DNA from: Paramoeba atlantica
Lineage: Eukaryota > Protista > Discosea
Direction: 5' to 3'
Assembly: GCA_977017575.1 (NCBI GenBank)
Contig: CDRNVI010000164.1
Coordinates: 1 to 64,000 of the forward strand
DNA: 64,000 bases
Shown: positions 3,945 to 10,819 of the stretch, in pieces
Layout of the letters: every line of letters starts with the position of its first letter
Numbering within the stretch: position 1 is the first letter of the stretch
Notes under the pieces: model-generated
The model's database searches: none
What the model was told of the DNA's origin: nothing
Seen by the model: the letters and a program-made list of their open reading frames with translations, nothing else
Made by a program: the position numbers and the translations under genes

Positions 3945-4258
3945 TGTACAGCTACTTCTGAACAAAACTAAACAAACGAACAAACAACCAAACTTCTGTA
4001 ACAAAACAAAAAACACGAAAAAGAAAATAATGCACTAAACTAGAATACTAAAGAAGATATTCCTCAAATTGTCTTTAAACACTTTTATTGATCCAATAAC
4101 TACTTCTCAAAACAGTTATACTTGAAAGAATTCTCTACAAATCTTTTTTTTCATCACACCTAACCTTTAATCTTCTTAGTAAACCACTTTTAACTTTTTT
4201 AACAAAAACTTGTGCTTTCTCTTTTCTCTTGCAACCCCTGGAGAACTTAATCTGTATA
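3945..4258 (+). repeat. 5' LTR of the gypsy element
   Basis: TGTACA...TGTATA, colinear without indels with 10506-10819. Followed by TAGCAAC at 4261, which could be a TGGCGAC-type primer-binding site altered by G-to-A changes. Confidence 0.9.
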
Positions 4259-7200
4259 CTTAGCAACACTGTTTTGAACTTATGAACTGTAACACAAACA
4301 CTGATGAAACTGTTTTGGATCAAACCACCCTTGGTCAAACAGTTGTGAATGAGAATACAACTCAGCAACGGCCTCAACCAAACTTGAATTTTGGCAATTT
4401 TGACCTTTTAACTATCATCAGCAAGTCTAAACCAAACAAAAAGGTTCCTCTCCCAAAGAACCTTACCCTGTATGAAGCAAAAATCCACAAGACAATTCAA
4501 AAATCTTTTGAATCATTCTTGAACTCAAGTCTCACACCACCTCTTGTAACAGGTGAAAACAGTCAAACACACTTTACCTATTTTCTCTCTAACATCTACT
4601 ATACATGGACTTACAACTTCTGGTTGAACCACAAATTTCTCTTTCAAGTGTTGTCTAAACACTTGAAGTTAAAGAGCTACACCATAGTTGCTATTTCCTT
4701 CCAATTTTTTTAAGATTTTTTAACAGCCATTAACATGGAACTGGGATCCAACAGTTTACTGGTCTCCACAAAGTGGATCATATGGTTAATGTTTGACAAT
4801 TCAATCAAACTCTCCCAACACCTTCAAATCTTCTGCCAAGCAGCAGAGAGAGAGTATAAGAGAGGCATACAGTTGACTAACTCTTGAATCTTCCAAACTC
4901 TACAAAACAAAATCCTCTCCTTACCTTTCTTAGAAGCCTGGCAAGCAGTCAAGAGGTTATCACCTGATCAACCCCCTGAAGAAACAGCTATCTCATATGA
5001 GAGCCAACCAAAATATCCTTTTATCTGCTCTAATACCACTTCTTCACCCACACTTATACTCCACCTGAACTTTTATGGTCAGAAATTCAAAGATGCAGCA
5101 CAACATCTGCAGCAGTAGATAATATGTTTGGCTTGTGCCAGTACTGATCACTTTTCCCTGAATTGGCCTCAAGTTCTCAGATACTGTGAACAATTTACCA
5201 AACTTAACAAACACTTCTTTTGTCTATTGCTGCTCCATTCATAGATTCAATATCATCCATGCTGACAAAAATTGTTGAGTGATTACAACTCTGCAAGCTG
5301 ATAATAAATCACCTCCATCAAAGAGAAGGTACAAACAACCACCACACAATCCATATAGAAACCCAAATGCTCATGGGAACAATTCTTACAAACCTCTTCA
5401 CAACACTGGAAAACCCTCCACAAAGAAACCACAAACTGAAGAACAACTCATTTGTTCCAAAGTTACTGGCTGCTTTGACTCTACATCTTCAAAAAGCAGC
5501 CATACAATCTGCTGCTTTGCCTCTACAACAACAACAAACTGTTGCTCAAGCACAACCTGCTATTCAACAAGGTAATGCTAATAAACTTTTCCAAAATTAC
5601 CCTATTGTTTTTATTAATATTGAAATTGATAAGAAAATTTCTCTTTTTGATAAACAATATCAGACTGTGTTATACAAACTTAACAGTTGTGAATCAGAAA
5701 AGGAAATCCCTCACACTCAAATATCTTTCAAATTGTTTTTTTGTAAAGAACACAAAATGCACTGTAGAATGATTGAGAGAACAGCCTATCAGGCACCTGC
5801 ATCTGCTCCCTGTGAAGTAGAATTCCAACTGTTGCAGCATCTTCCAACCCAAAACACCCATCCACAAAAAGCTGATAAGGTCACAGCAATAATTGGGTTG
5901 CCACTGGAATTTCAAGCAACTGTGAAAGGCCTCCAAATGGTCACTTGTCTTGATACTGGGGCAGGACTCAATGCTATTAGCTGAGAATTAATACAAAAAC
6001 ATGGATTCAAAATTGAGGAAATCAAAGAACTTGAAACTCCATTCTGCATTACAATGGGAAATTCAACTCAAACTCTCACTAAGCAAGCAATTGCAACCAC
6101 ATTTCAATTTAAGGAATGCACTGCTAAGTTATGGTTTCTCATTGTTGATCACTTGCCAGTTCAATGCTTAATCAATCAACCAATCTTGCATCACATATAA
6201 ATTGCATATAATCCAAGTGACAACACTATAACTTACAGTGGTAAATTCCAAACACAAGCAAACTCCCCCTCAAATCTCTCTAATCAGATGGATCCACTTA
6301 CACTTGAGCATTTAAAGATCTTTAATCATGCAAAATTACTTCATGCCCAAGCTGTGAGGGCAAAGTGTCTATCAAGAGCTTTAAAAACAATAACACTCAA
6401 ATTAGTTGGACCTATCACATCACCACAAAGATTCTTTATACTGATAGTCACTGGAAGTGAAAAGTTGCTGGCTTTTCCTGAACTTGTGAACATCTGTAGT
6501 GATGAAGAAATCACACTGTTGGTAGCAAATCCAACAGCACAAACTGTTACCATACCAAACAAAGCTGTGCTTGGAAAAGTTTACATGGTCAATGAATAAA
6601 ATGTGACTGATATAGAGCTCATTGAACTCACAAAAAATCCTATTACAGAAACAAAATTTAATTTCAAGAAGGAAACCCCTTCTCTACTGAAAAAACTAGA
6701 ACAAAACACAAAACACCCAATTGTAATTGGCAGAAAACAAAACCAATCTATCCAAAATAACTCCAAAAGGACAACAAACCCTTTATTAAAAACAAACAAT
6801 TTGATGACATTGGTGAAGAACCAGTTATTCAAATGCTTGTAGCAAAATTGGTAGATTCTCAAAAGCCTACTGATGAATTTGATTCTCTGCAAACTCAGAA
6901 TCCAGAACTTCAACAAGTTTATGATGAGTTTAAAATCAATTCAATAAATTTAACAACTGTTCAAAAAGAAAAATTAGCAACTCTGCTTTACTCTTTCAAA
7001 GATCTTTGAAGTAAAGAAAAAAGAGAAGGACTTCTTGAAAGAACAACCTTTACTTCTCACACAATAGAGGTTGAGGGTCCATCAATTAAACATAATCCTC
7101 ACAGAACAAGTTCAGTTGAAAATTATATCATTTAGCAACACATCAATAAGATGGCACTTCACAAAGTTATTAGACCATCAAAATTGCTTTGGGCTTCACC

Positions 7201-10170: not shown

Positions 10171-10505
10171 TCACAATGTTACCCCTCCACTTTCGATAAA
10201 CACCCTCCCAACTCAACTTCAACCCAATTTTTCTGCTTAGGGGAGGAGGCTACAAGTCAATACTTATTACACTAATTATGAATAACAAACCAAGAGTTAC
10301 ACTCCAATGGTCCTTCCTCTTGCAAGAAAGTGAGGTTTTCCTCTCAAAACTCTTGGGTTTCCTCACACAACAAGCTTTTGCCCCTTCCACACTAGCTCTC
10401 AGCATTGGCTCTCTCCTGCAAACAACTCCTGAACCATGGCTTTTTTTCCCACTGCTTTACAAATCCTTATAATGCAAGTTAAACATTCTTCAAGCTCCAG
10501 GAGGA

Positions 10506-10819
10506 TGCACAGTTGCTTCTGAACAAAACTAAATGACTGAACAAACAATCAAACTCTCACAACAAAACAAGAAACACAAAAAAGAAAATAATATGTTAAA
10601 CTAAAACACTAAAAAAGATATTCCTCAAATTGTCTTCAAACACCTTTATTGATCCAGTAACTACTTCCCAGAACAGTTATGCCTGAAAGAATTTTCTACA
10701 AATCTTTTCTTTCATCACACCTGACCTTTAACCTCCTTAGTAAACCACTTTTAACTTTTTTAACAAAAACTTGTGCTTTCCCTTTTCTCTTGCAACCTCT
10801 GTAAAACTTAATCTGCACA
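10506..10819 (+). repeat. 3' LTR of the gypsy element
   Basis: TGCACA...TGCACA, preceded by the purine run AGGAGGA and followed by the GTGT target-site copy. Confidence 0.9.

Follow-up and report, generated by a model that had tools for sequence, protein, structure and literature searches.

We analyzed the first 64,000 nucleotides (the window) of contig CDRNVI010000164.1 (C164; C-numbers denote contigs of the assembly) from the Paramoeba atlantica assembly GCA_977017575.1, in which a retrotransposon with long terminal repeats (LTRs) occupies positions 3945-10819. Almost all changes that this element has accumulated are transitions from C to T or from G to A; they followed insertion, are even between the two strands, affect CpG sites first and are regionally restricted. 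We consider it moderately probable that they reflect deamination, after insertion, of cytosines in silenced or duplicated DNA, with CpG affected first, most simply because these cytosines are methylated; the role of methylation, and of whatever directs it, is what we infer from this pattern. In such a scheme repeats or heterochromatin would be marked by cytosine methylation, and methylated cytosines would be lost by deamination, spontaneous or enzyme-assisted. Once the element had integrated, its double-stranded copy would have had cytosines turned into thymine on either strand, those in CpG first and to saturation and all others at an approximately tenfold lower, context-flat rate, with almost nothing else being changed. 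The same decay affects the neighbouring relics, which form a CpG desert, an unrelated subtelomeric family and, weakly, every copy of a 40-kb duplication.

Direction and timing of the changes in the element

The repeat search returned one direct-repeat pair (3945-4244 and 10506-10805, 87% identity), which was lengthened to 314 bp by MAFFT alignment. The resulting 5' LTR (3945-4258) and 3' LTR (10506-10819), both read on the forward strand, differ at 40 of 314 positions, and these differences comprise 38 transitions, two transversions (A/C at 3976 and G/T at 4241) and no indels. An earlier reading of the sequence (the original prediction) had put the count at about 38 transitions and two transversions without indels, which proved to be exact. 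The ratio of 38:2 is far from the 49 transitions and 27 transversions observed in tandem arrays of the window (binomial p = 6e-6, Fisher p = 2e-4).

To assign polarity we relied exclusively on natural copies of the family. The reference was the 3' LTR of the copy on C155, which is identical to the LTR on C142 and to the last 133 bp of the LTR on C200. Compared to this reference, the 5' LTR of the window has undergone 42 C>T/G>A changes along with one transversion and retains two of 14 CpG sites, while the 3' LTR carries 34 such changes and one transversion and retains none of 14; T>C or A>G changes were found in neither. Over the whole element, 641 transitions and 15 transversions separate the window copy from the C155 copy (Fisher test of transitions and transversions against the tandem arrays, p = 8e-19), and 620 of the 641 transitions have C or G in the C155 copy and T or A in the window copy. 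C>T changes make up approximately 95% of all changes, 21% of all C/G sites were hit, and the GC content of the element was lowered from 42.6% to 33.9%. The proposed C>T/G>A polarity thus withstood comparison with natural copies. The opposite direction, A-to-G editing of the GC-richer copies, was ruled out by the open frame of the C155 copy together with the abundant T/A singletons in each damaged copy.

Among the LTR hits, 23 were private to the 5' LTR, 15 were private to the 3' LTR and 19 were shared (ten of these at CpG), while independent hits at the observed context rates would be expected to produce approximately 14 shared sites. Because of these private hits and a shared count near the independent expectation, most or all of the damage arose after integration, in agreement with the original prediction, which had argued from the identity of LTRs at insertion. 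The changes affect both strands, as had also been noted; 329 C>T and 291 G>A changes, counted on the plus strand, are randomly interleaved in nearly equal numbers, and each 500-bp stretch of the element has a similar share of its C/G sites hit (18-29%). Strand-coherent runs of C>T or G>A, as would result from single-strand processive repeat-induced point mutation (RIP), were not observed in the element (runs test z = -0.9; range -1.5 to +0.6).

These results bear directly on APOBEC-like editing of the cDNA during reverse transcription, in which case the copy would have been mutated on arrival. Such editing would match the target (a retroelement), the type of change (C>T/G>A) and a mild preference for a 5' pyrimidine at non-CpG sites (19% vs 12%), and APOBEC3 proteins do inactivate retroelements by cytosine deamination. 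However, APOBEC3 editing is strand-asymmetric and precedes integration, while the changes described here are symmetric, mostly post-integration and extend to DNA other than retroelements, including flanking DNA and the whole 40-kb duplication with the same spectrum. Since the 38 LTR-private hits, the strand symmetry and the even density all speak against it, editing of the cDNA is essentially excluded, and we consider it highly improbable.

The consequences for coding capacity follow the same direction. In the C155 copy gag-pol is a single open frame of 2051 codons, whereas the decayed gag-pol frame of the window copy (4282-10282, plus strand) contains 26 stop codons and eight indel runs relative to it. 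All but one of these stops were made by C>T/G>A, with 12 originating from CGA/CGG, seven from CAA/CAG and six from TGG. The corresponding amino-acid changes are dominated by D>N (36), P>L (30), P>S (22) and E>K (19), followed by C>Y (7) and W>stop (6). The decay of pol motifs had been described correctly with regard to its direction (D>N, P>S/L, E>K, C>Y), but most TGA stops derive from CGA (Arg) and not, as had been proposed, from TGG.

Judged by its sequence features, the element is a chromovirus-type Ty3/gypsy LTR retrotransposon, an assignment based on the C-terminal chromodomain and the order of protease, reverse transcriptase, RNase H and integrase. The aspartic protease motif D-T-G-A (5952-5963) was found by three-frame translation. 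The remaining domains were identified with Pfam on the better-preserved C155 copy, where they occur in the order RVT_1, RNase H, Integrase_H2C2, rve and Chromo, and their coordinates were mapped across to the plus strand of the window: reverse transcriptase RVT_1 (7217-7687, E = 1.8e-31), RNase H (RT_RNaseH/RT_RNaseH_2, 7886-8281), integrase (Integrase_H2C2 and rve core, 8831-9334) and the chromodomain (10019-10168, E = 8.5e-6, 26 bits with a cut-off of 25.1). The LTR termini are TG...CA in the 3' LTR and TG...(C>T)A in the 5' LTR. The primer-binding-site region (4259-4280) directly follows the 5' LTR and has itself been hit by C>T/G>A when compared with the C155 copy, and a purine-rich tract containing GGAGGA (10498-10505) adjoins the 3' LTR. 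The GTGT target-site duplications on either side of the element (3941-3944 and 10820-10823) were read directly and lie, like the tract and the features above, on the plus strand. The TG...CA termini, the 4-bp target duplication, the domain order and the C-terminal chromodomain are shared with chromoviruses, and the element likewise resides in a heterochromatin-like chromosome end, 3.2 kb from the TTTAGGG telomere. The nearest database proteins exhibit only 47-48% identity and come from metagenome contigs. Other copies of the family are present on C144 (99.7% identity), on C143 (97%, with the 3' end deleted) and, in full, on C155, in addition to partial copies on C210 and C200 and one LTR on C142. 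The C155 insertion (C155:50212-57180, minus strand) is flanked by a GATG duplication, and the empty site with a single GATG/CATC is found at C210:3172-3203.

Sequence context of the hits

The original prediction described the process as context-independent, based on a tally of approximately six CpG, nine CpA, 12 CpT and seven CpC changes between the LTRs. This tally relied on present-day neighbours, which are themselves mutated; our recount from present-day neighbours gave CpA 16, CpT 14, CpC 6 and CpG 2. With ancestral neighbours the claim fails, as CpG is affected first and to saturation. Using the outgroup copy, 16 of 28 CpG sites in the 5' LTR were hit, compared to ten of 27 CpC, nine of 35 CpA and seven of 42 CpT. 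Because most CpGs were destroyed in both LTRs, these hits are nearly invisible when one LTR is compared with the other. Over the whole element the proportion of sites hit was 55% for CpG, a saturation value, followed by CpC (20%), CpT (15%) and CpA (14%). The C155 copy has 195 CpG dinucleotides, of which only six are left in the window copy (97% lost), 70 having become TG, 88 CA and 29 TA, and the observed/expected ratio is 0.03 for CpG vs 1.01 for GpC.

Copies with less damage exhibit the CpG preference more clearly still. The lightly hit copy on C200 has lost 44 of 88 CpG (50%) with only 2% of its other cytosines changed, and the LTR pair of the young C155 insertion differs at four positions, all of them CpG. 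A survival fit across six copies placed the ratio of CpG to non-CpG rates at approximately 8-23 per cytosine. This CpG-first pattern is the classic signature of methylated CpG, which the original prediction had set aside.

Hits outside CpG make up about two thirds of the total and are context-flat. A plant-like difference between CHG and CHH was absent from these sites (15.9% each, Fisher p = 1.0). CpA, the context preferred by RIP in Neurospora, was the least affected of the four contexts, so that a preference of this type is lacking in the element. At CpG sites, no 5'-T preference of the kind seen in Microbotryum was detected; TCG was in fact hit least (44%, vs 74% for CCG).

Restriction to repeats and the subtelomeric duplication

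The window begins with a telomere array of (CCCTAAA)n at the contig end (positions 1 to about 690, TTTAGGG on the other strand), which was read directly and bears out the earlier statement that the organism has TTTAGGG telomeres. It is followed by a telomere-proximal CpG desert of transposon relics (701-17000), delimited by 1-kb and 4-kb dinucleotide maps to a length of 15-17 kb; positions 701-15700 hold nine CpG vs 289 GpC. In the 1-kb map the CpG/GpC ratio is approximately 0.03 at 0.7-15.7 kb and approximately 0.5-1 past about 17.7 kb. The desert includes a Ty1/copia-like relic of an integrase region (1200-2035, minus strand), which was recognized by a 66% BLAST match to C155 DNA adjoining SH3_retrovirus/RVT_2 open reading frames (ORFs). 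In this relic the same excess of AT-ward transitions (130 vs 31) is superimposed on older divergence. The Ty1/copia-like element on C155 (61255-64038; SH3_retrovirus, RVT_2) has ORFs of 346 and 568 aa that are open despite a CpG content of 0-5/kb.

Four indirect controls, namely the CpG boundary described above, the mosaic structure of C155, the tandem arrays and the base-composition equilibrium, argue for decay that is specific to repeats. On C155 the CpG-rich young insertion (19-33 CpG/kb) lies amid CpG-poor transposon DNA (0-5/kb), and in the gene-like DNA that adjoins this transposon DNA at 45-49 kb CpG is at least as frequent as GpC. The tandem arrays with units of 72, 93 and 176 bp, polarised by majority state, represent the only ordinary spectrum found in this DNA, with 49 transitions and 27 transversions (36% transversions), while transversions account for 2-5% of events in dispersed repeats. 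Finally, at the measured rates of approximately 3 GC>AT and 0.17 AT>GC changes per 1000, neutral DNA would settle at about 5% GC, but all 1-kb bins of the window are at 23% or more. The boundary, the mosaic and the arrays are in accordance with the original prediction that repeats rather than all DNA are affected.

These controls also speak against an untargeted process, in which the whole genome would have an extreme GC-to-AT transition bias, the element would be an old neutral relic, and genes would keep C, G and CpG by selection. Such a bias could account for the predominance of C>T among recent singletons in the gene-like part of the duplication as well, for the AT-rich genome (25-42% GC in the window) and for the 4-8-fold per-site excess of GC>AT that even the tandem arrays display. 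It does not agree with the predicted equilibrium, with the undepleted CpG, relative to GpC, in adjoining non-transposon DNA, or with the different share of transversions in arrays and dispersed repeats, and we consider it unlikely.

The arrays lie at 29994-31111, 56380-57233 and 60794-62660 (72, 93 and 176 bp, respectively). The 72-bp array is located inside long ORFs on both strands and contains 116 GpC/kb. Dispersed pairs that seemed to have an ordinary transition/transversion ratio when all repeats were compared with one another were rejected as controls, as their transversions cluster in misaligned, replaced or tandem-array segments and the ratio is high elsewhere.

The same spectrum was observed in sequences unrelated to the element. 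A second subtelomeric family consists of identical, CpG-rich copies on C137 and C189 and damaged copies on C159, C151 and C174. Relative to C137/C189, the numbers of GC>AT transitions, AT>GC transitions and transversions were 157:6:0 for C159, 72:7:1 for C151 and 108:4:1 for C174, with 24-53% of CpG sites hit vs 2-8% in other contexts. C174, the most damaged copy (CpG observed/expected 0.03), abuts a telomere array, and the undamaged copies are found at contig starts. Similarly, 130 transitions and one transversion separate the DNA flanking the C155 insertion from the homologous DNA on C210.

Positions 1-39500 of the window belong to a subtelomeric segment (the 40-kb duplication) that is present on at least three chromosome ends (C164, C144 and C143, with a fragment on C243) at 97-99.7% identity. 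Changes specific to one copy comprise 91 GC>AT transitions, eight AT>GC transitions and six transversions. When polarised by an outgroup, GC>AT transitions account for 37 of 37 changes in C144 and 27 of 35 in C164 over 0-31 kb, and for 27 of 32 over 31-39.5 kb. Per 1000 sites, polarised singletons affected 20.6 CpG cytosines, 2.5 other cytosines and approximately 0.14 A/T sites. A ratio of 43:29 at 30-39 kb, which might have been taken for an ordinary spectrum, was caused by the 72-bp array; with the array removed, the GC>AT proportion of 27 of 32 given above is obtained. Recent hits also fall in gene-like DNA without historic CpG depletion, including an intact orphan ORF of 1537 aa. These hits provide the strongest reason to think that the process may be attracted by copy number or position and not by transposon identity. 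The ORF in question (23244-27857, minus strand) has no significant Pfam family and is conserved in the three subtelomere copies, with few copy-specific differences, all of them C>T/G>A.

The genealogy of the segment consists of a sister pair up to approximately 31 kb and of a star past that point, and this shift suggests subtelomeric gene conversion. Judging by the contig coordinates of dispersed matches, C143 and C144 appear to belong to different chromosomes once the subtelomere ends. A deletion in C143 has removed 1255 bp of the segment, among them the 3' LTR (window 10095-11348). C143 becomes more divergent toward the telomere, but this was rejected as a sign that the transposon island mutates faster, since the step coincides with the breakpoint of this deletion and the genealogy differs by segment.

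At such low divergence a sequencing or assembly artefact has to be weighed, either base-calling at modified cytosines or collapsed or mis-polished repeats. Systematic sequencing errors can reach the level of 0.1% differences, and base-calling error may contribute to the copy-specific singletons that distinguish C164 from C144 at this level. Most of the approximately 620 changes in the element are, however, common to the three subtelomere copies; the coding decay they cause is coherent, the TpA products record double hits at CpG, and independent families exhibit the same pattern. As an account of the decay, an artefact is hardly credible.

Targeting, candidate enzymes and comparison with known systems

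The proposed decay of methylated cytosines has to be set against several observations that weigh against it. About two thirds of the hits lie outside CpG, without a difference between CHG and CHH and with an at least 18-fold excess over reverse transitions, and a non-CpG excess of this kind is far above that produced by spontaneous decay of 5-methylcytosine (5mC) in plants or vertebrates. In the duplication, the gene-like part has lately received C>T changes at about the same frequency as the transposon island, and targeting may accordingly depend on copy number or on position and not on transposon identity. Searches of the 45.7-Mb assembly for C5-methyltransferases (PF00145, TIGR00675) returned zero candidates each, and the SRA reader domain (SAD_SRA) was not found in it either, although the six-frame search employed is insensitive on intron-rich contigs. 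Lastly, an ORF of the window with a resemblance to Tet_JBP proteins (see below) is invisible to Pfam in this respect even at E <= 1 and has no sequence match in PDB.

These same searches, with their limited sensitivity on these contigs, detected no homologue of the RID/Masc1/DIM-2 type (PF00145, TIGR00675). The NAD1 deaminase was likewise not found in the assembly, in a search in which the NAD1 control itself remained silent. The absence of enzymes is of limited weight because, on the contig set to which the window belongs, the universal deaminase fold PF00383 was missed too and Ribosomal_S2 was seen as one exon only. A ParB-like protein and a beta-class amino-methyltransferase considered for 31887-37962 received no Pfam support on 15 ORFs of this interval.

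The distribution of matches indicates that the assembly seems, by its sequence content, to hold two organisms or compartments. Contigs up to approximately C136 contain intronless genes in near-identical pairs, Tet_JBP proteins of JBP1/2 size, all PF00383 matches and at least 1851 reverse transcriptase candidates of the LINE/DIRS type, mostly in open frames; PF00383 and Tet_JBP matches fall only in this set. Contigs C137-C248, including the window, are characterized by TTTAGGG telomeres, Ty3-type reverse transcriptases and a dispersed gene family, and the exon-split Ribosomal_S2 gene of this set is located at C164:305816. Four consecutive TTTAGGG units occur 4724 times in the assembly and, among the matches listed, their places start at C138, while four TTAGGG units occur once, on C205. 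An amoeba and a kinetoplastid endosymbiont would fit these two contig sets. The paper on Paramoeba pemaquidensis and Perkinsela reports a GC content of 43-47% and is silent on telomeres.

One ORF of the window (41596-42666, plus strand, 356 aa) is placed by the protein atlas near Tet_JBP clusters (score 0.95, 198 of 256 features, 25 of 30 hits). We take this as a hint that oxidisable 5mC exists here, and as nothing more. CpG is denser around this ORF than anywhere else in the window (23-34 CpG/kb at 40.7-42.7 kb).

The label RIP-like, under which the decay was originally described, could not be established, given the lack of a CpA preference and of strand runs, the persistence of identical copies and the failure to find a RID or DNA methyltransferase (DNMT) homologue. 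A RIP-like defence outside fungi would involve a DNMT-like enzyme or a cytosine deaminase that is directed by duplication, requires no stable 5mC and inherently favours C followed by G. It would be compatible with the dominance of C>T and the large proportion of C/G sites hit, with the large, context-flat non-CpG component, with nearly unhit copies alongside heavily hit ones, with gene-like DNA in three duplicates (including the intact 1537-aa ORF) gaining CpG-biased C>T, and with the absence of DNMT and SRA matches in an insensitive search. In contrast, the damage forms a continuum (four CpG hits, then 2%, 5% and 9%) with a nearly constant ratio of CpG to non-CpG hits and therefore appears clock-like and not burst-like. 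Furthermore, strand-coherent runs are lacking, identical dispersed copies persist (C137 and C189; the C155 3' LTR and its counterparts on C142 and C200), CpG depletion in the 40-kb duplication is limited to its transposon part, and the insensitive searches yielded no candidate enzyme, RID being reported as restricted to fungi (PMC13297926). We accord this explanation a minority chance that deserves to be kept in mind. A slightly smaller chance is given to a repeat- or duplication-directed cytosine-deamination defence that operates without a canonical C5-methyltransferase, a RIP analogue that would have evolved outside fungi and would act on CpG first and then in a context-flat manner.

RIP in Neurospora and other Ascomycota shares with the window the polarised C>T/G>A changes on both strands of duplicated DNA after integration, the stop-riddled ORFs, the lowered GC content and the involvement of duplicated DNA other than transposons. 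It differs in its preference for CpA instead of CpG, in its strand runs, in that identical copies persist here and in that no RID/DIM-2 homologue was found; moreover, the other contig set of the assembly carries many open reverse-transcriptase frames. Our literature search for RIP and RIP-like hypermutation returned reports from fungi only. In Pucciniomycotina (Microbotryum, Puccinia), TpCpG hypermutation is likewise centred on CpG in repeats, has no established enzyme and raises the same question of methylation vs RIP (Horns et al. 2012), but it has the 5'-T preference that is missing here. The excess of CpG transitions in basidiomycete transposons was read as 5mC deamination by the same authors (PMC3318451).

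Decay of methylated transposons, as known from vertebrates, plants, Agaricomycotina and Ustilaginomycotina, shares with the window the dominance and saturation of CpG to TpG/CpA changes, the confinement to transposons with neighbours that keep their CpG, the involvement of both strands and the gradual increase with insertion age. The window is unlike these systems in the very large context-flat share of non-CpG C>T, in the near absence of other substitutions, in the lack of detected DNMT and SRA proteins (in a weak search) and in its host, a non-fungal protist with TTTAGGG telomeres. Taken together, this known type of decay, here in a lineage where it had not been described before, is the best supported reading.

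Next to nothing has been described of how DNA is modified in this protist lineage. The locus offers a natural series, consisting of nearly unhit, lightly hit and saturated copies of one family together with a 40-kb duplication that is still gaining hits, and makes it possible to measure how fast, in which contexts and at which targets a process turns cytosine into thymine. Should the repeats carry 5mC, this would be a case of methylation aimed at transposons in a new lineage, with transposon-borne TET-like genes perhaps acting against it; a lack of 5mC would instead point to a mutational genome defence of a new kind. In either case the process would account for the CpG deserts, the AT-rich transposon islands and the stop-riddled yet frame-preserving transposon genes of this genome.

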